Sequence record: LT960552.1
Strand: one strand, 5' to 3'
DNA: 64,000 nt
Shown: positions 6,081 through 61,099 of the stretch, piece by piece
How positions within the stretch are numbered: position 1 is the stretch's first letter
How the letters are laid out: each line of letters begins with the position of its first letter
Notes under the pieces: model-generated
What the model was told of the DNA's origin: nothing
Seen by the model: only the letters and a program-made list of their open reading frames with translations
Database searches by the model: none
Program-made: the position numbers and the translations under genes

Positions 6081-6146
6081 CATATTAAAAGTACTTGCAT
6101 TATATTAGCGAGTACTTTATAATGAAGTTATCAAGTGAGGTACACA

Positions 6147-6194
6147 ATGAAATGGTTAATTATAGCAGTACTGATTTACATTATCTTTTTTTAA
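6147..6194 (+). CDS. 15-aa hydrophobic peptide MKWLIIAVLIYIIFF
   Basis: first ATG after a promoter, GAGGT RBS. Confidence 0.55.
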   Translation: MKWLIIAVLIYIIFF

Positions 6195-6213
6195 TCAAGA
6201 GGAAGTATTAAAA

Positions 6214-6423
6214 ATGGCACATAAAGATCGTCGTTACAATGTTAACCCTGAATTTACCGGACACGAATCAGGCAAGAAACAATTTGTTATTCGTTTTTGT
6301 GGTGATTTTGTTTCTTCTCATTCAAAGCGTGATGACGCAGAAAAAGAGATTGCCCGCTGGAAAAGTACTGGAACCGTTCCACATATCGGAAAGCAATGGG
6401 ATAATCTAGTTGAACCTGTTTAA
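6214..6423 (+). CDS. hypothetical protein
   Basis: ORF, GAGGA RBS. Confidence 0.75.
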   Translation: MAHKDRRYNVNPEFTGHESGKKQFVIRFCGDFVSSHSKRDDAEKEIARWKSTGTVPHIGKQWDNLVEPV

Positions 6424-6488
6424 TTAATCAATATTAATAGTACTGGTGAAATATCCAGTACTGTTTTTTTATACAGCATAATATATAA

Positions 6489-6533
6489 TAGATACATTTT
6501 CGCACCCTGTGGGTCAAAGACATTTCGCTGTCT
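6489..6533 (-). ncRNA. two-hairpin element, copy G
   Basis: minus AGACA-GCGAAA-TGTCT ttg ACCC-ACA-GGGT; minus promoter TTGACA (6565-6570) -17- TATTAT (6542-6547). Confidence 0.6.
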
Positions 6534-6658
6534 ATGAAGTAATAATACAGTATTTTGATATACGTGTCAAGGATTAAATTAAAATTAAAACAAAAGAAAG
6601 TACTTGCATTAAGTATGAAGTACTGTATAATCTTTTATATCGAAACGGGAGAATTAAA

Positions 6659-13360: not shown

Positions 13361-13367
13361 TTGAAAG

Positions 13368-13403
13368 AAGGGGTTGACTTCGGTTAACCCTTTTTGCTAT
13401 ACT
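13368..13403 (+). promoter_or_regulatory. fused terminator/promoter cassette
   Basis: same sequence as the 4570 cassette. Confidence 0.8.
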
Positions 13404-13411
13404 AATATTAC

Positions 13412-13455
13412 TCCAGAGAAATGGACTAACCCTATAGGGTGCAGAAATGTATCTA
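13412..13455 (+). ncRNA. two-hairpin element, copy J
   Basis: TCCA-GAGAAA-TGGA cta ACCC-TATA-GGGT. Confidence 0.65.
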
Positions 13456-13574
13456 TATGATATAGTACTGTGTATTTGTACAGGAAAATAAATTAAAAAT
13501 TTAAATGAAAAAGAGCTTGCATTATATGCTGTAGCTGATAGAATGTAGTTATTGAAACAACGGGAGTAAATGAA

Positions 13575-13814
13575 ATGGCTAATAAAGAAGTAGAATTTAA
13601 AGTTAGAAAATGGTCAGAAACCAATGCTAAGCCGTTCGATGTAGTGCTGGTGGATCATTTAAAAAACAACCAACATTACCAACCACACGTAGAATTCAGT
13701 ACTATTGAAAATGCTGAAAAACACATGGAAACGTTGAGTACTTTAATTACAACCAATCCAGAACGCATTAACTTTATTCGTGACCATTGGCCGGTAGATG
13801 CGGGTATAGAATAA
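13575..13814 (+). CDS. hypothetical protein
   Basis: leader AAACAACGGGAGTAAATGAAATG identical to that of the 2273 gene. Confidence 0.8.
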   Translation: MANKEVEFKVRKWSETNAKPFDVVLVDHLKNNQHYQPHVEFSTIENAEKHMETLSTLITTNPERINFIRDHWPVDAGIE

Positions 13815-13897
13815 AAATTCAAACGAAAAAAGTACTTGACTATATCAGTTGAGTACTTTAAAATAGAATCTTAATCAACGCAATAGGAAACGAAATC

Positions 13898-15484: not shown

Positions 15485-15545
15485 TAATTGACAAACTCTG
15501 TCAGTACTGATATACTGGCAGAATATTAAATCAGAGGATACAATC

Positions 15546-15728
15546 ATGGTTCAAGTAGATATGACTGAATTGCGGAAACGTTGGTATGATCTGGCACGTT
15601 CAGGTACTGCTATCACTGGTGATAATAGAACGCTTTTCAATACACTTGATGGCTGGCAACGTCAAGAATTAAAAAATGCATATCTTAAAGGTATGACAGA
15701 TGAAGTGCAAGCATGGGATGAAGCATAA
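15546..15728 (+). CDS. hypothetical protein
   Basis: ORF, GAGGA RBS. Confidence 0.75.
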   Translation: MVQVDMTELRKRWYDLARSGTAITGDNRTLFNTLDGWQRQELKNAYLKGMTDEVQAWDEA

Positions 15729-15737
15729 TTAAAAATA

Positions 15738-15771
15738 AAGGCTTGACTTAGGTTAAGCCTTTTGCTATAGT
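15738..15771 (+). promoter_or_regulatory. fused terminator/promoter cassette
   Basis: AGGCTTGAC-ttag-GTTAAGCCT-TTT, TTGACT-17-TATAGT. Confidence 0.8.
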
Positions 15772-15779
15772 ACTATCAA

Positions 15780-15823
15780 TGCAGCGAAATGCACTAACCC
15801 TATAGGGTGCGGAGCTATGTCTG
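15780..15823 (+). ncRNA. two-hairpin element, copy K
   Basis: TGCA-GCGAAA-TGCA cta ACCC-TATA-GGGT (compensatory C-G to G-C). Confidence 0.65.
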
Positions 15824-15915
15824 TAAAAGATATTAAAATTCAAATGAAAAGTACTTGACCTATATAGCTGGTGGATGATATATTATTAGTACTGGATGCA
15901 AATGAGGGCAATACT

Positions 15916-16703: not shown

Positions 16704-16768
16704 AGTACTTGACATTTATTAAAGCCACTGTCATAATGTCGGTGGCTTAGTCTATTGAGGAATAGCAT

Positions 16769-16969
16769 ATGTTTAATGTAGTAGGTTGTTTAGGGTGTAC
16801 CATTGGTAGTGCAGCGTCAGTCGATGAAGCTATCACACTTGTACGTTCACAGGTGCCAGTAGGTAAGAAGAAGCAGAGCACCATGCGTAACGCTCTCTCT
16901 ACGCTACACCAAGGCCAGCAGTACCATGTAGACTATGGTCATTCAGGGGTAACCGTAGAGCGGCTATAG
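16769..16969 (+). CDS. hypothetical protein
   Basis: GAGGA RBS, promoter TTGACA-17-CATAAT. Confidence 0.7.
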   Translation: MFNVVGCLGCTIGSAASVDEAITLVRSQVPVGKKKQSTMRNALSTLHQGQQYHVDYGHSGVTVERL

Positions 16970-17193
16970 GTAAGCCGTACGCTGTTATATGGCATTTTTA
17001 ATTTAATTCAAAAAATATTTTATACAGAATAAAAGTACTTGACTTTTGAAATGAGTAAGGGATACCTTAACTTTTCTGTATAAAATATGTTTGGACTATG
17101 CAAAATTTTTTTGCTTACTAAAGGCCAGTAACGCTTAGCACCCCTATAATCGGGGTATATGAGTATAATGTTATATTCTATTAGGAGAATAGA

Positions 17194-21911: not shown

Positions 21912-22491
21912 TACCTATATAAAAGAGAATAAATTAGTTGAAACTTTAATATTTTCATTAAGAATAATTCCTTTATTAAAACGTTCAGATGAATTGTTTA
22001 TGAGTATTAACAAAGACTTAGAATATAGTTTTGACAGTACTTTTCACAGTAATGAAGAAACGTATACTGTTATTATAAAAGAAGATAGATATATTAACAT
22101 TTCTGCATCATACGTAGGGGATAATGGATATACATTCAATCGTCCTATTATAAGAATTCAATATCAAGATATAGACAGTAGTACTAATATTGGAATTACT
22201 TATTTTACATATTCCCCTCTACATAAAAGTTTCACTATTGATGGTAATAATAATTATGTAGTTCCTAGACCATTTGTACATGATGAAGCATGGTACTTTC
22301 AAAAGTTAACACAACATGATTTATATCCAGAGAGTTGGTATATTCATGGTTCTAATCTAATGAATAAGTTAATAGATTTGGATGGTAATTTTGTATATAT
22401 GCGGGTACAAACTGGATTTGATGAAGAAGAACTTCAGAACATATCAAATATTTTAGATTTAATGGAAATAAAAAATGCTAAACATAATTGA
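21874..22491 (+). CDS. paralog-family protein
   Basis: HDEAWYFQKLTQHD. Confidence 0.75.
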   Translation: MGFTMTNTVIVGDTYIKENKLVETLIFSLRIIPLLKRSDELFMSINKDLEYSFDSTFHSNEETYTVIIKEDRYINISASYVGDNGYTFNRPIIRIQYQDIDSSTNIGITYFTYSPLHKSFTIDGNNNYVVPRPFVHDEAWYFQKLTQHDLYPESWYIHGSNLMNKLIDLDGNFVYMRVQTGFDEEELQNISNILDLMEIKNAKHN

Positions 22492-26794: not shown

Positions 26795-27607
26795 TTGATG
26801 TTTTTAAAATTCTTTTTAACACATGAAGATTCAAATACTTCAAAAGGTTGGTCTATAGGAAATACTTTATTAGTTAGTACTCATAATGATCATAAGAAAG
26901 AACTATATGAAACTACTAATTTTCATAATGTATTAAGTAACTTAGCATTTCATATGAAATCAACAAATGTACATACTGTTGATAAAGATTATAGAGTATT
27001 TTTAATAAATGTTTCAGATGAAGCCATGTTCCAGTTAGAAATGTTATATATTCCAGAAAATAGTTTTTGTACATATAATATATTAACAGGTAAAATTGGT
27101 TTTGGTGATTCAGAAAGGAATGCGATTTTAGCAAGTTTAGATGAAAAAAATGGTATGAGTTTATCAGGTTGGGTTAAAAATGACAATAAGAATTCATTAT
27201 TTTTCGATTTTAATGTAACCTCAACCAAGTTAATAGATATGGACGAATACCAACTTACTGTACCAGATGCATTTTATGATCAAGTACTTAATGAATTAAG
27301 ACCTTACATATGTCAAGAAAAAATACATTTATTAAAAGTTTTTGGTCAATATGTTTTATATAATAAAACTGCTTTAAATAATTATTTAGATTTATATTTT
27401 GAAAATTTAAATTCTTCTGGTTCAGAAAAGAAAGAAATTGAAATACAATATTGTCAATTAACTAGAATACAAATGGTTTTAGCTATCAAACTATTCATGG
27501 AAGATGATAAAGATTTCATTTTATATAAAGATGAATTTCCTGATGAATACTATTCAATAGGTGAATTGTGTAGAAAAATAATGAACGTTTCAGGTGAAAC
27601 GTTTTAA
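26795..27607 (+). CDS. hypothetical protein (contains DEAMFQLEMLY, paralog-like motif)
   Basis: long ORF. Confidence 0.75.
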   Translation: MMFLKFFLTHEDSNTSKGWSIGNTLLVSTHNDHKKELYETTNFHNVLSNLAFHMKSTNVHTVDKDYRVFLINVSDEAMFQLEMLYIPENSFCTYNILTGKIGFGDSERNAILASLDEKNGMSLSGWVKNDNKNSLFFDFNVTSTKLIDMDEYQLTVPDAFYDQVLNELRPYICQEKIHLLKVFGQYVLYNKTALNNYLDLYFENLNSSGSEKKEIEIQYCQLTRIQMVLAIKLFMEDDKDFILYKDEFPDEYYSIGELCRKIMNVSGETF

Positions 27608-27627
27608 AAAATTATGCTATAATATAC

Positions 27628-27653
27628 AAGACAGCACATCGCTGTCTTTTTTT
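27628..27653 (+). terminator. intrinsic terminator
   Basis: AAGACAGC-acatc-GCTGTCTT + T tract; overlaps the start region of a TGcTATAAT promoter (27615-27623). Confidence 0.7.
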
Positions 27654-27657
27654 AATT

Positions 27658-28137
27658 GAGAAAAACTCTGGATGGCTTTGTTAAGCAAAGATGTTTAAAA
27701 CCTGATCCTATCGAAAAGTAGATGGCAGATGAGTATTCCATTCAGTACGAACAGCAAAAGAAACCCGTTAGAAGTACGTGCAGTCATACAAAGAGACATA
27801 AGACACTGAGATCACGGCAATGCGGCTGTATAAAGCATGACAGTACTACATAAGTTCATGCCTAGATAGACATATAGGATCGCACCTACCTAATGTATAA
27901 GGGAGTCAAAAAATGCGATTGATTTATTACAATATAGATCCGTCCAGATTTTGACAAGTACTTAAGCTGTTCATGTAGCTTGAGTATTCAGTGTGGCAAT
28001 GTATAAAACCACGACCGTTGTATAGAACCGCGATAGAAAGAAACAGGACAACCCGCTTTCACTCTTTTATAGAAATTCGTGACATGAAATTACTACGACT
28101 ATCATCGTCAGTTTTTCTCCCCACCCGATGGGGGGAT
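27658..28137 (+). ncRNA. candidate large structured ncRNA
   Basis: nested helices 27658-27667/28110-28119, 27667-27675/27940-27948, 27704-27711/27874-27881; 12-bp hairpin 27957-27988; G.U pairs favour + strand; no credible ORF. Confidence 0.65.
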
Positions 28138-28210
28138 GAAAATACATTAACAAATCTCGTCAGTATTATAAACAGAAGTACTATTCAGTACTATATTAAT
28201 TAAGAAATTT

Positions 28211-28310
28211 AAATCACAAATGAACGTAGTGCAAACGAAGTTCATAAGTGATTTACTGGAACATCGTAGATGTTCCTTGTATAAATGAGAATCGGCAAAG
28301 TACTGATTCT
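28211..28310 (+). ncRNA. three consecutive hairpins (3' domain of the RNA or separate leader)
   Basis: stems 28211-28254, 28258-28276, 28288-28310. Confidence 0.45.
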
Positions 28311-28327
28311 GTAACAGTGAGATATAA

Positions 28328-28855
28328 ATGAAGATTGTATATAAATGCAAAGATACGGATCAAGTATTAACATCCGTAGATATGAGTACGTTTAATGGTT
28401 ATATGATTCAAGTAGAAAACGGAAACAAAATTAGTAATATAACTGAATTAAGTAATAATTTTGTTCTTTCTAAAATTGAGTTAAGACCTACTAAAAAGCC
28501 ACTCATACATAAAGTTGAATACAATGGTCATATAGAATACCGATACAACAATAATAATGTTAGTAGTGTTTATTATGAATTTAACAATAAAAAATACGGA
28601 GAGTATCAGAAGTATGATTTAAATGGAGTACTGTTGGATAGAATTTTTTATTTTGATGGTTTAGACATTACTACAGAAATTATGCAATTTATTGGTTATA
28701 AAAACGGGTTAACATCATTTAAAGATTATAAATTTAAAGAAGATGAACTGTTTAATATAATGATGAAGTACGGTTTTTATTTTAGATTTTGTAATGACTC
28801 GGAACGGGAAAGTTCTGATTTTGATCGTATCAATGAGTACTGTCAATACATATAA
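28328..28855 (+). CDS. hypothetical protein with a MORN-variant-like segment
   Basis: KKYGEYQKYDLNGVLLDRIFYFDG. Confidence 0.7.
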   Translation: MKIVYKCKDTDQVLTSVDMSTFNGYMIQVENGNKISNITELSNNFVLSKIELRPTKKPLIHKVEYNGHIEYRYNNNNVSSVYYEFNNKKYGEYQKYDLNGVLLDRIFYFDGLDITTEIMQFIGYKNGLTSFKDYKFKEDELFNIMMKYGFYFRFCNDSERESSDFDRINEYCQYI

Positions 28856-33984: not shown

Positions 33985-34251
33985 ATGTATGCAATATATA
34001 GCTTTGAAGATTTGACTTATCATCATGATTTTAGCTTGATCAAAAAGGGATTTAGTGATATGGAAACGGCAGAATCATTCAAAGCTGAACTTGAGTCTGG
34101 ACGTTTTTCATCTGAATATCTAGCTGAATTAGTTGTATGCAAAGAACTAAAAACTCATGATAACAACGAATCTAACATCGGATTTGATAAAGAAGATATG
34201 ATGGAAGATTATATTGAATTGGTTCACAAATATTTTGGAGATGTAAAATGA
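33985..34251 (+). CDS. hypothetical protein
   Basis: start refined after GAGGT. Confidence 0.7.
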   Translation: MYAIYSFEDLTYHHDFSLIKKGFSDMETAESFKAELESGRFSSEYLAELVVCKELKTHDNNESNIGFDKEDMMEDYIELVHKYFGDVK

Positions 34252-35408
34252 ATACTGAAATTATTTTTAATGATCTAATGAACTTAACGGCAACAAATGA
34301 TGCCTTTATGTGGAAGGATTTTAAATCTGTTGGTGGTGGAACCTTCCGTATTTTTACATACCGCCTTGCAAGTTATACTGATTTTTTATCACCAAGTGCA
34401 TTAGAATGTCGTGGTACAATGTTTGAGATTTCTAAACATGATCATGATACTGGTTCATATCTTCGTGTAGCATCAAGAACTCCACAAAAGTTCTTTAATG
34501 CTTATGAAAACCCATTTACTATGTATGATAAAACTACATTGAGTTCAGAAATTTCGGTTGTAATGGATAAACTTGATGGTTCTATTATTAGTACTTTTAT
34601 GGATGTTGATTTTGTAGTACGTACTAAATCACATGGATCGTTAGATTCTGAACATGCATATAATAGTACTGCACTGTTACATAAAGATAAAGAATTCTAT
34701 GAAGAAGTATTTCAAGCAGAAATGTTCGGATATACAGTAAACATGGAATATACTTCACCGGAATTTCGTATTGTTCTTCCTTATCAAGAAGATGATTTAA
34801 CGGTATTGAATTTACGGCATCGTGCTAATGGATCTTTGTTGATTGGTAAAGAATTAGAGGCTCAATTCCCATTACTTTATGCACGTTCTGTATTTGCAAA
34901 GTACGGTGAAATTGATAGTACTTTTCCAATGCATGAAACATTATATGATAGTATTGAAGCTGTTCGTACTATGACTGATATTGAGGGTTATGTATTGATC
35001 CTTAATGATGGTCGTATGTGTAAGATTAAGACTGACTGGTATAGTGCATTACATTTTACAAAAGATAGTATTAATGTTGATTCACGTTTATATGAAGCAG
35101 TTATTGCTGGTGGTTCAGATGATTTAAAACAATTATTTGGTACTGATCCTTATAGTCTTAAAAAGATCGAAAAAATGGAACAGCTTGTTTTTTCTTGCTA
35201 TAATAAGTTAGTACATGATGTTGAAACGTTCGTAGAAGCGAACAAACACATGGAACGAAAAGACTATGCGTTAAAAGTTCAGGCTGAATTGCCTAATGAA
35301 CTTGGTAAACCAGGTCTAGCATTTAATCTTTATAATTCTAAGCCCGTAGATTATAAAAACACTATGCTAAAATATATGAAGGATGTTCTTAAAGAATTCG
35401 AAGTTTAA
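34248..35408 (+). CDS. rnlA: RNA ligase 1 (T4 RnlA-like)
   Basis: FRIFTYRLASY, ALECRG.MF, P.KFFN, KLDGS (KxDG), EGYV, KIKTDWY. Confidence 0.92.
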   Translation: MNTEIIFNDLMNLTATNDAFMWKDFKSVGGGTFRIFTYRLASYTDFLSPSALECRGTMFEISKHDHDTGSYLRVASRTPQKFFNAYENPFTMYDKTTLSSEISVVMDKLDGSIISTFMDVDFVVRTKSHGSLDSEHAYNSTALLHKDKEFYEEVFQAEMFGYTVNMEYTSPEFRIVLPYQEDDLTVLNLRHRANGSLLIGKELEAQFPLLYARSVFAKYGEIDSTFPMHETLYDSIEAVRTMTDIEGYVLILNDGRMCKIKTDWYSALHFTKDSINVDSRLYEAVIAGGSDDLKQLFGTDPYSLKKIEKMEQLVFSCYNKLVHDVETFVEANKHMERKDYALKVQAELPNELGKPGLAFNLYNSKPVDYKNTMLKYMKDVLKEFEV

Positions 35409-35434
35409 GGACATTTATAGCCTAACAAGGAGTA

Positions 35435-35674
35435 GTGATGGCTAAACCGAAATATAATTCAAAAAAGGGCGATGTACGAACACCTGAAGAACATAGAAAA
35501 ATACTACAAGAAATAGACGCTGTGCAAAGTGAACGCTCAAGGAAAGGGGTTGCTAAAAGTGCAAAGCGTCTAAAAAATACTTTAGGTATTAGCAGTACTA
35601 TGTATAAAAAGGAACGTAAGCCTAAAAATACCAAACCAAAGATTTATGATTTAGGAAGATACGCACGTGAGTAA
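35435..35674 (+). CDS. small basic protein
   Basis: AGGAG RBS. Confidence 0.7.
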   Translation: MMAKPKYNSKKGDVRTPEEHRKILQEIDAVQSERSRKGVAKSAKRLKNTLGISSTMYKKERKPKNTKPKIYDLGRYARE

Positions 35675-35894
35675 TATCCAAACAATAGAACTAGTTAAAG
35701 TTGTATATAAAGATCGTGAGTTTTTTCTTATACCTGCATCAGCACCGCTTTCCTATTCAGAAAAAAATGAAATGGTAAGTTATGTTAGAGATATTGGTGA
35801 TGTTGCATTTATTGTTGATGATGAAGTGTACTTCGATGAAGGAGCTAACTTCAACTTAACAATGAAGTACTGTAACAAATACGTTTTCATTTAA
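35667..35894 (+). CDS. hypothetical protein
   Basis: coupled ORF. Confidence 0.65.
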   Translation: MSNIQTIELVKVVYKDREFFLIPASAPLSYSEKNEMVSYVRDIGDVAFIVDDEVYFDEGANFNLTMKYCNKYVFI

Positions 35895-35906
35895 AAGGAG
35901 ATTTCC

Positions 35907-36131
35907 ATGAAAGTAGAAGTTCAACACAGTATTGTACAAGACATGTCGGTAGTTAAGTTTTTATCTTTAAAAGATTATCACCGAGCACTTGACTTTTTAG
36001 ACAAGAATGGGTTATCATGGACACCTCTTAAATATAGTTCTCGATTAGACACGGCGAGTATTCGTGTATCAGAGCATGTATTAACAATAATCACTGATAA
36101 ATTTGGAATAGGAAAATCATGCCAACATTAA
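35907..36131 (+). CDS. hypothetical protein
   Basis: AGGAG RBS. Confidence 0.75.
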   Translation: MKVEVQHSIVQDMSVVKFLSLKDYHRALDFLDKNGLSWTPLKYSSRLDTASIRVSEHVLTIITDKFGIGKSCQH

Positions 36132-37045
36132 CATTAACAGTTGGATTACCAGGATGTGGTAAAACCACATGGGCGAATGAGCAAGTTCGAACATCACGGT
36201 CTAAAACCGTGAATGTAAACCTTGATGATGTTCGCCAAACAATGGCAGGTTCACATAGTAATTACAAGTTCCGCAAAGACAACGAACAGTACATGCAAAA
36301 CGCTCAGTACAGTGCAGCAGAACATGCAGCAGTTAATGGTTGGAATATCATTGTATCAGATACAAATTTAAACCCAACTGTTCGCAATAAGTGGAAAGAA
36401 TTTGCTAAAAAATATAATTACACTTACAAAGAACATAGCTTCTTAGAAGAATATAAGAAAGATAAAACTTTCGAACATAATTTCTTTGCAGTGAAAGGGT
36501 TTGTTAAACAATGTAAAGAACGTAACCTTTTGCGTGAAAAATCAGTACCAGAAGATGTAATTGATGGAATGGCTGAAAAGTACTTCTATAATACAATGAA
36601 AGTTGAAACTCCAACGGTATTTGATTTGGAAGACGTAATCATTGTTGATATCGATGGTACTCTTGCACATATGGATGGTAAACGTGGTCCATATGAAGAA
36701 AACAAAGTACTATTAGATACTCCAGATTCTGAAGTAATTCTTTCAGTACTGGCTGAAAAGAACTATCTAGGTCGTAAAGTAATCGTCATGAGTGGTCGTC
36801 ATGTAACTTGCCAAGAAGATACAGAAGCATGGTTACAGAAGTACGGAGTACCATATGATCATATCTTCATGCGTAAAGCTGATGACAATCGTTCTGATGA
36901 TATTGTGAAGTACGAGCTTTACATGGAACACGTACACAACAAATACAACGTTGCGAAAATCTATGATGATCGTGATCAAGTATGTTTCATGTGGCGGCAT
37001 CTATTAGGTCTTAAAGTATTACAAGTTGCTGAAGGTAACTTTTAA
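36119..37045 (+). CDS. pseT: polynucleotide 5'-kinase/3'-phosphatase (T4 PseT-like)
   Basis: P-loop GLPGCGKTT; HAD motif DIDGT; SGR; DDR. Confidence 0.93.
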   Translation: MPTLTLTVGLPGCGKTTWANEQVRTSRSKTVNVNLDDVRQTMAGSHSNYKFRKDNEQYMQNAQYSAAEHAAVNGWNIIVSDTNLNPTVRNKWKEFAKKYNYTYKEHSFLEEYKKDKTFEHNFFAVKGFVKQCKERNLLREKSVPEDVIDGMAEKYFYNTMKVETPTVFDLEDVIIVDIDGTLAHMDGKRGPYEENKVLLDTPDSEVILSVLAEKNYLGRKVIVMSGRHVTCQEDTEAWLQKYGVPYDHIFMRKADDNRSDDIVKYELYMEHVHNKYNVAKIYDDRDQVCFMWRHLLGLKVLQVAEGNF

Positions 37046-51620: not shown

Positions 51621-51787
51621 ATCAAATCTCCTATAAAAGTATGATATTTTTAATTATCATTCCAATTTTGTCTTGACACAGGAATGAACACGTGATACAT
51701 TGTATCTTGTACTGAGTTATTTATTTTAGGGTGTTTCTAAATGCATAATTTATATTCATTAAAAAAATGGAACATCAAAAAAAATTA

Positions 51788-51848
51788 TGTTATAATATAA
51801 GCATCAAAGCGTTGTAGCTTTGAATAATAGACTAAGGGAGTCTTAGAT
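51788..51848 (+). promoter_or_regulatory. TGtTATAAT promoter plus two-hairpin NAD-gene leader, copy 1
   Basis: TCAAAGC-GTTGTA-GCTTTGA ... CTAAG-GGAGT-CTTAG-ATATG. Confidence 0.7.
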
Positions 51849-61039: not shown

Positions 61040-61099
61040 ATGAAACAGCTTTAAAAATTATGGTATAATCTAAACATAACTACAATGAAGGAAATAAAA

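Follow-up and report, generated by a model that had tools for sequence, protein, structure and literature searches.

What is encoded in the gap between the genes g053 and g055 of a giant phage, and is it a gene at all? We addressed this question in a window of 64,000 nucleotides (nt), i.e. the whole stretch of DNA that was analysed, taken from the sequence record LT960552.1; all coordinates given below refer to this window. Over the 901 bases around the feature, the window matches Yersinia phage fHe-Yen9-03 (LT960552.1) at the same coordinates with 100% identity. This phage is an Eneladusvirus and belongs to the jumbo myoviruses of the Rak2/121Q/GAP32 group, whose genomes measure about 350 kb. 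The genes that flank the gap (27608-28327), g053 (270 amino acids (aa)) and g055 (175 aa), are both hypothetical, and g055 is followed on its 3' side by a Dam-type methylase and then a cytidylyltransferase. An earlier, sequence-only reading of the window had proposed that the gap holds a large, undescribed structured RNA on the + strand. This proposal was supported by covariation in 55 homologues, strand-specific G-U pairs, a conserved private promoter and the lack of any Rfam 15 match or annotation. Judged by the comparison of homologues, the gap is the site of a structured RNA encoded on the + strand, the strand of all features described below.

The covariation analysis was performed on 55 non-redundant family members with less than 97% identity, and the structural model was built from a scan of all column pairs in the alignment of these sequences, followed by region-by-region inspection. 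The model comprises 112 pairs, which are formed in 88.3% of cases over the 55 sequences, compared to 37-44% when the partners are slid by 1-3 columns. The sequence-only reading had named covariation in homologous gaps as one of the points on which its RNA would stand or fall; both sides have changed in 73 of the 112 pairs (32-43 when the partners are slid), and the covariation score of 0.405, compared to 0.163 in shuffles, was reached by none of 500 shuffles. RNAalifold, applied to 13 orthologues, gave 84 pairs, 40 of them compensatory. The folding of the region is also more stable than expected by chance: the + strand from 27655 to 28140 folds with -118.8 kcal/mol (z = -3.14, with 0 of 100 shuffles as good), while the same test on the - strand gave z = -1.28. 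Since G-U and U-G pairs exceed A-C and C-A mismatches by 433 to 118, the RNA is assigned to the + strand, to which the G-U pairs of the sequence-only reading had already pointed. Compensatory, helix-preserving changes are thus found on one strand only, which is the mark of a structured non-coding RNA (ncRNA) gene. In addition, about 90 nucleotides, mainly in junctions and loops, are invariant.

The description of the gap as free of genes held in so far as no open reading frame (ORF) of at least 80 aa is present; GenBank, on the other hand, lists within it a coding sequence (CDS) of 70 aa with a GTG start, g054 (27991-28203). Since g054 lies wholly within the structured RNA, is unannotated in GAP32, CBB, BF and pEa_SNUABM_19, and has its reading frame disrupted by orthologue indels of 7-8 nt, it is probably an annotation artefact and not a gene. 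A small conserved ORF starting from GGGGGGAUGAAAAUG was rejected on the basis of the alignments, as it reads MKIH-stop in the window copy and ends after four codons in the Citrobacter copy, with the second AUG missing in both. The observation that the gap is richer in G+C than its flanks was correct (0.35-0.41 over 27600-28200 compared to about 0.23-0.29 on either side).

By blastn, the same g053/g055 gap and gene order were found in 62 phage records, and the phage homologues belong to Eneladusvirus, Mimasvirus, Asteriusvirus and unclassified relatives (Munch, 7t3 and fENko-Kae01), all of them Rak2-like jumbo phages. Paralogues were identified by exact-pattern scans followed by an nhmmer profile, and only profile-confirmed matches were kept; most of the exact-pattern matches in bacterial and archaeal genomes and metagenomes were due to chance (about 80 were expected for the pattern in question) and were discarded. 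In this way, 3-4 diverged copies with 65-75% identity were found per Rak2-like genome. In phage fHe-Yen9-04, they are located at about 24.7 kb (the window copy), 260.5 kb and 334.8 kb, plus a fourth one; the corresponding copy of GAP32 and of the pEa_SNUABM phages is located at about 174-177 kb. Four copies were also found in CBB, GAP32, Serratia phage BF and two complete metagenomic genomes, and three in 121Q. Within the 64-kb window, neither blastn nor nhmmer revealed any further family copy, the only recurrences being those of a promoter word described below. In a phylogenetic tree, the copies of classes C and D group across genera, and the duplications would therefore be older than the genera; there are also some indications that copies have exchanged sequence. 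With regard to the surroundings of the copies, the class B copy of phage UB lies between an annotated RNA polymerase sigma factor and an HNH endonuclease, and copy C of fHe-Yen9-04 has a sigma factor and a DksA-like protein on its upstream side; a neighbourhood of transcription factors may thus recur around the copies. ARAGORN detected tRNAs at only one of 25 related loci, more than 3 kb away, and no tmRNA.

The fold consists of about 18 helices and three covarying pseudoknots, which are paired in 92-100% of the sequences with multiple exchanges and are formed by P1 with the P4 loop, by the P12 loop with 28082-88, and by 28017-21 with the P15 loop. The conserved RNA body extends from 27661 to 28170 (nhmmer envelope 27627-28176), both ends being predicted. 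Its 5' domain (27668-27748) contains P1 (27668-75/27738-45; 92.5% paired), which is engaged in the first pseudoknot and occurs in versions such as GAAUGA/UCAUUC, GAAAGG/CCUUUC, GAUUGA/UCAAUC and CUGUUGG/CCGACAG, the hairpins P2 (27676-80/27686-90) and P3 (27702-04/27726-28 and 27707-12/27721-25), and P4 (27733-35/27746-48; 100% paired). The adjacent domain (27751-27829) is closed by P5 (27751-55/27825-29), which is 100% paired with three of five pairs changed on both sides, and harbours P6 (27765-68/27814-17 and 27771-72/27812-13; 92% paired), the variable hairpin P7 and the invariant strands AAAAGAAAC and CAAUGCG. In the P5/P6 region of the class-A copy of Escherichia phage UE-S1, we observed a tandem duplication of about 57 nt (CAGAAGAAACCCGTCAG...CACGGCAATGCGGCT) at about 860-980 of the stretch examined in that phage. 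Hairpin P8 (GCAUGA/UCAUGC; 27835-40/27856-61) shows double-sided changes in all six pairs. The strands around P9 (27862-27904), including GAUAGACAUAUA and UAAGGGA, are unchanged in 55 of 55 sequences, and P9 itself (27875-78/27885-88) finds support in a paired A/U deletion (UAGG/CCUA vs. UAAGG/CCUUA) and in its class C version, AAGA/UCUU.

The closing helix P10 (GUCAAAA/UUUUGAC; 27905-11/27949-55) aligns poorly; inspected sequence by sequence, a closing helix of at least 4 bp is present in 49 of the 55 members, in more than 20 sequence versions. P10 (27905-27955) encloses hairpin P11 (27921-27/27934-40) and a conserved CGUCCA...AAAUUU module, and in most classes a sub-domain ending in CGUCCAAAAUUU lies within it. 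In class D, GCCA-GAAA-UGGC, a hairpin capped by GAAA, takes the place of this domain, and a related module is found within P16; the Citrobacter-type and Enterobacter-type copies from bacterial islands carry the CGUCCAAAAUUU module at both P10 and P16. Such movable peripheral modules are typical of compactly folded RNAs, e.g. group I introns and RNase P. The 12-bp hairpin P12 (27957-68/27977-88) shows double changes in 10 of 11 counted pairs, and the pairing of its loop in the second pseudoknot (27970-76/28082-88) is 99.2% formed, with six of seven pairs covarying and versions such as UUCAUGU/ACAUGAA, AUUGUAU/AUACAAU, AUUGCAU/AUGCAAU and UCGAAU/AUUCGA. It is followed by hairpin P13 (27992-96/28009-13; 90.5% paired, double changes in four of five pairs), the third pseudoknot (28017-21/28048-52; 100% paired, with CG/UA and GC/AU exchanges), and P14 (28029-33/28077-81; 99.3% paired, five of five pairs covarying), which encloses P15 (28036-40/28056-60; 100% paired) and P16 (28063-65/28071-73; 95% paired, three of three pairs covarying).

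Towards the 3' end, the short hairpin P17 (28097-99/28107-09), which does not covary, and the first invariant CGUCAR block, ending at 28111, are found within 28097-28111. A closure of two pairs, U27667-A28110 and C27666-G28111, holds the 5' and 3' domains together. After a U-rich strand, there is the C/G-rich hairpin P18 (28120-26/28130-35; 88% paired, with a possible lower stem), whose variation consists nearly entirely of C-G to U-G changes and is compatible with the + strand only. The invariant GGGGGAUGAAA lies 3' of P18 within 28112-28143, and the second invariant block, AUCUCGUCAGUA, at 28155-28166. At the triplet 27666/28111/28163, CGG, UAA and UGG are found in 23, 20 and 8 of the 55 sequences, respectively; position 27666 covaries with the final nucleotide of each CGUCAR block, which points to a base triple or to pairings that alternate.

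About a third of the helices of the sequence-only reading turned out to be mispartnered. Six of them hold: compensatory changes support CTTTG/CAAAG (P2), GCATGA/TCATGC (P8), the 12-bp hairpin 27957-27988 (P12), GTGG/CCAC and GAAAG/CTTTC, and the C/G-rich hairpin is supported via C-to-U changes only. The 10-bp closing helix was retained in part, as its two inner pairs are present family-wide and 27666-28111 covaries (CG in 24, UA in 20 and UG in 9 of 55), while the remainder is lineage-specific. The four other helices had to be replaced: the 5' arm of the proposed TCTGGATGG/CCGTCCAGA helix, TCTGGATGG, pairs instead with CCAUUCAG at 27738-45; GATCCTAT, thought to pair with ATAGGATC, sits in its own covarying hairpin P3; in place of AGTCAA/TTGATT, GUCAAAA pairs with UUUUGAC at 27949-55; and GTTGTA/TACGAC is 71% paired and shows no covariation, compared to a GUUGU-ACAAC pairing (28048-52) found in 100% of the sequences.

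The RNA appears to have a promoter of its own. The extended -10 element that had been noticed at 27615-27623, TGCTATAAT, is indeed present, and a TGnTAYAMT word is located upstream of the RNA in 49 of the 55 members, the remaining six having TATACT with TGAAAT. A -35-like TGAAAC (27595-27600) is found in the last codons of g053, separated from TATAAT by a 17-nt spacer, and most of the 55 members carry a TGAAAC-like word at the same spacing. As a sequence motif, a sigma-70-type promoter (TGAAAC, 17 nt, TGnTATAAT) thus precedes all 55 copies, and in classes B-E and the island copies the -10 element ends 13-20 nt before the CUG of P1. The promoter word AAAAATTATGCTATAATATA (27606-27626) recurs in the window at 35351-35376, 51779-51799 and 61050-61072 and looks like a class of early phage promoters using the host sigma-70. 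The terminator hairpin that had been described as overlapping the -10 element lies just downstream of it (27628-27648) and does not overlap. This 8-bp hairpin (27628-35/27641-48), which is followed by seven U (27628-27653), was detected in a terminator scan, and its stem covaries among class-A orthologues; only class A has a terminator-like hairpin between the -10 element and the body of the RNA. It is presumably the terminator of the upstream operon and possibly also a 5' stem-loop of the RNA.

On the other side of the RNA, there is a long class-A-specific hairpin (28210-28256) and a second hairpin (28258-28276), both with compensatory changes among class-A orthologues, and a -10-like TATAAA (28280-28285), which reads TATAAT in relatives. 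Since the hexamer follows two conserved hairpins and reads TATAAT in relatives, it suggests a candidate promoter for g055 itself. It is also conceivable that the two hairpins are cut by a processing enzyme such as RNase III, or that they extend the RNA at its 3' end specifically in class A. With regard to orientation, the genes between which copy E of GAP32 is located, the EndoVII gene (gp49) and two more, are all encoded on the opposite strand, and the copy in an Enterobacter island converges on a cI-like gene. On the strength of the promoter in every copy, these convergent contexts, and the two hairpins and the -10-like hexamer before g055, the locus is best described as a stand-alone RNA gene and not a 5' leader.

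In order to assess novelty, we compared the whole window to the 4227 covariance models of Rfam 15, which include GOLLD, ROOL, OLE, HEARO, raiA, group I/II introns, RNase P, tmRNA, 6S and SRP, and obtained no match at the gathering threshold. Weak matches were inspected for seven copies; they were at chance level over 27400-28500 of the window (E<=10), and none overlapped the RNA in the other copies (E<=5). At five bacterial loci, the sole Rfam match was an unrelated small RNA. GenBank and RefSeq list nothing at the copies, or spurious small ORFs. The lack of RNase P, tmRNA, 6S and intron signatures stated by the sequence-only reading was corroborated, as Rfam 15 and ARAGORN found none in the window. 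A group I intron was rejected, because the gene upstream closes with its own stop codon and a terminator, a separate gene lies downstream in every phage, and there is no Intron_gpI match at E<=10. A tmRNA was rejected as well, since ARAGORN found none in the window or the 25 related loci. tmRNA and RNase P RNA resemble the family in having several pseudoknots and a length of 350-450 nt and in being sometimes phage-encoded, but the family has no tRNA-like end and no conserved tag ORF in addition to lacking an Rfam or ARAGORN match. Because no Rfam 15 match, annotation or published description was found, the family is, as far as can be judged from sequence comparison, a new class of large RNA.

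The closest parallels are other large RNAs. ROOL and GOLLD form RNA-only multimeric cages according to cryo-electron microscopy (cryo-EM) (PMC12286853). Like the family described here, they are large (500-800 nt), highly structured, encoded by stand-alone genes of phages or prophages, of unknown function and rich in conserved unpaired nucleotides; the loop-strand pairings described here could, moreover, equally be intermolecular. However, the Rfam models of both give no match here, and they are found in Firmicutes and lake metagenomes, whereas this family resides in jumbo myoviruses infecting Enterobacteria. ROOL and GOLLD often adjoin tRNA genes, unlike the family (24 of 25 loci without tRNA), which also differs in having 3-4 diverged paralogues per genome. 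OLE RNA (about 600 nt, from extremophilic Firmicutes), which is presumed to be a scaffold of a ribonucleoprotein, is similar in size and density of invariant nucleotides; it shows no homology, however, and is a single-copy chromosomal gene with partner proteins encoded alongside, whereas no conserved partner gene is found here. Within jumbo phages, a 'putative lncRNA' of PA5oct, ncRNA002, has 451 nt and accounts for 4.65% of early phage reads (PMC7318152). PA5oct is distantly related to the Rak2/121Q group and provides a precedent for abundant long ncRNAs in such phages; ncRNA002 is likewise untranslated, is comparable in length and is located at a similar place on the map (about 22 kb from the left end; PA5oct 21951-22401), and an nhmmer search with the family profile revealed no similarity to it.

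The family is also present in bacterial chromosomes. Profile-confirmed members were found in Citrobacter amalonaticus, Enterobacter chinensis, Silvania, a Buttiauxella metagenome-assembled genome and an Enterobacteriaceae isolate, and, in E. coli, in 2 of 5426 complete genomes, where RefSeq has no annotation at the RNA copies. The RNA adjoins an integrase, which is either a large serine recombinase at ppdD/hofB or a tyrosine integrase, or is located at ffs. The small islands are laid out as integrase, RNA, cI-like repressor, Ner-like protein, a 286-aa membrane protein, an LprI-like protein and a small serine recombinase, and their contents include no replication or virion genes. Pfam and PADLOC searches with the neighbouring proteins yielded only LprI-like and weak candidate-defence matches. 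No homologue was found in 72,556 plasmids. In the tree, the island RNAs form two clades nested among the phage copies, and the islands share one backbone; given two RNA clades on a single backbone, the RNA looks as if it had been swapped by cassette exchange.

What could the RNA do? We favour, with a probability of roughly 0.6, that 27630-28170 (+) is a stand-alone ncRNA gene of about 500 nt belonging to an undescribed family, whose RNA would act in trans as a particle in conflict. The RNA would be made early in infection and act as a compact particle of RNA alone or of RNA and protein, with unpaired invariant positions that would bind or remodel some partner shared by the different hosts. With pseudoknot sequences specific to each of them, the paralogues would represent versions that cannot replace one another, and the island copies would exploit or interfere with the phage RNAs, resulting in a phage-host or phage-island conflict. 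The action in trans is suggested by the pseudoknots and invariant junctions as well as by the convergent contexts and the promoters that make the copies stand-alone units; the role in conflict is suggested by the locations in early regions, by the fact that paralogues which are not interchangeable have been kept, and by islands having captured and swapped the RNA.

Several points weigh against this interpretation. A 'trans-acting particle' is a class of mechanism and not a mechanism, and where the RNA starts and ends, how abundant it is and when it is made are all predictions. The invariant single strands, compared to the 16S, 23S and 5S rRNAs, three tRNAs and the 4.5S RNA of E. coli, gave a single complementary 8-mer, which is at chance level, and no protein family is common to the neighbourhoods of phage and island RNAs. 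Covariation is the same for intramolecular and intermolecular pairing. The class-A hairpin with its seven U could end transcription of the RNA itself. Directly after the first CGUCAG, the island copies and those of classes D and E have a terminator-like hairpin with a U run, and P18 and the second CGUCAG, beyond that hairpin, remain invariant; since conservation extends past the hairpin, the functional unit may not be one simple transcript. The literature search found no description of the family, but subscription journals were mostly outside it and an earlier account is thus possible.

The evidence was also weighed for other interpretations. The RNA could be a ribozyme whose invariant junctions form the active site, with the two CGUCAR blocks as processing sites, or one that acts on another RNA in trans. 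Its size, its pseudoknot-locked core and its approximately 90 invariant, mostly unpaired nucleotides are as in large ribozymes, CGUCAR occurs twice with both copies covarying with 27666, and the peripheral module has moved between helices across classes as in group I introns and RNase P. Yet not even a weak match to an Rfam ribozyme or intron was obtained, the RNA has no exons on either side, none of its motifs was recognised as catalytic, and conservation alone cannot separate a ribozyme from a scaffold. We consider a ribozyme unlikely but a serious alternative, as it would show just such an architecture. Alternatively, the locus might be a replication origin at which an early untranslated transcript forms an R-loop near the G-run and primes DNA synthesis, as in the case of T4 oriE/oriA and ColE1 RNA II; the copies would then be several origins, and the island copies would let the phage replisome amplify the islands. 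The RNAs are indeed untranslated, have strong promoters of the early type and are dispersed in genomes with T4-like recombination genes (gp46/47 and gp49 are located beside copy E of GAP32), their length of about 500 nt resembles that of RNA II, a C-run/G-run is found near the 3' end, and the islands have no replication genes of their own. ColE1 RNA II (about 550 nt, folded) and the T4 oriE/oriA transcripts are likewise untranslated and made from promoters of the host RNA polymerase, and the T4 origins are several and dispersed; these RNAs, however, are not known to have a pseudoknotted invariant core, and no antisense partner like RNA I was seen here. Known R-loop origins do not need such complexity, and strong folding would oppose the hybrid. 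Moreover, there is neither a match in the 72,556 plasmids nor an inflection of the GC skew at the locus, no iterons were seen, and the pattern of conservation is that of base pairing in RNA, G-U pairs being confined to one strand. Both this priming role and the amplification of islands by it therefore appear improbable to us.

Two further interpretations concern the nature of the locus itself. A cis-acting leader for g055, the Dam methylase and the cytidylyltransferase, i.e. a riboswitch, thermosensor or processive antiterminator, would fit the position of the window copy upstream of co-directional genes. In some copies, the conserved unit includes a terminator-like hairpin, and an antiterminator RNA could override it. 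However, convergent genes follow copy E of GAP32 and the copy in the Enterobacter island, the downstream genes differ among copies, g055 apparently has its own -10 element after two hairpins, and 500 nt is far above the size of known leaders of these kinds, which makes a leader very improbable. If there were no RNA at all, the gap would represent a DNA-level element, a degraded gene or a chance folding of a G+C-richer stretch; the g054 CDS lies inside it, and AT-rich genomes yield many chance hairpins. In view of the compensatory changes in 73 of 112 pairs, the far lower values of the slid and shuffled controls, the excess of G-U over A-C and the lack of a conserved ORF, this is hardly credible. 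The trans-acting particle is thus the interpretation that we retain. In a bolder form, which we find doubtful, the family would be a new RNA machine of giant phages, either a ribozyme or a self-assembling particle with intermolecular 'pseudoknots', in which the paralogues form orthogonal assemblies and the islands capture and swap versions in order to sabotage or exploit the phage.

Elsewhere in the window (34248-37045), three tandem ORFs of 74-79 aa lie between an RNA ligase (g066) and a polynucleotide kinase/3'-phosphatase (g070). This pair of enzymes resembles the RNA-repair pair of T4 and is located about 7 kb downstream of the RNA gene. The ORF-poor stretch of 710 nt at 35409-36118 was considered as a further RNA gene and rejected, as it contains three small tandem ORFs. 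Other stretches without an ORF of at least 80 aa are found at 1-1082, 6081-6658, 13361-13897, 15485-15870 and 16723-17193; some of them are richer in G+C (0.35-0.39), and they may contain small genes or more non-coding elements.

Large RNAs with complex tertiary folds are rare, and every class discovered to date (RNase P, group I/II introns, tmRNA, OLE, GOLLD, ROOL and the omega RNAs of IscB) has given rise to a field of its own. The family described here is well suited to study, with three covarying pseudoknots, about 90 invariant nucleotides and natural paralogues that provide built-in specificity swaps; it is carried by cultivable phages of E. coli, Yersinia, Serratia, Erwinia and Cronobacter, and a counterpart exists in bacterial islands. 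Recognising the RNA should prevent the annotation of spurious ORFs such as g054. For the jumbo phages themselves, whose genomes of about 350 kb have no assigned function for about half of their genes, the family would account for four of the largest 'empty' gaps.

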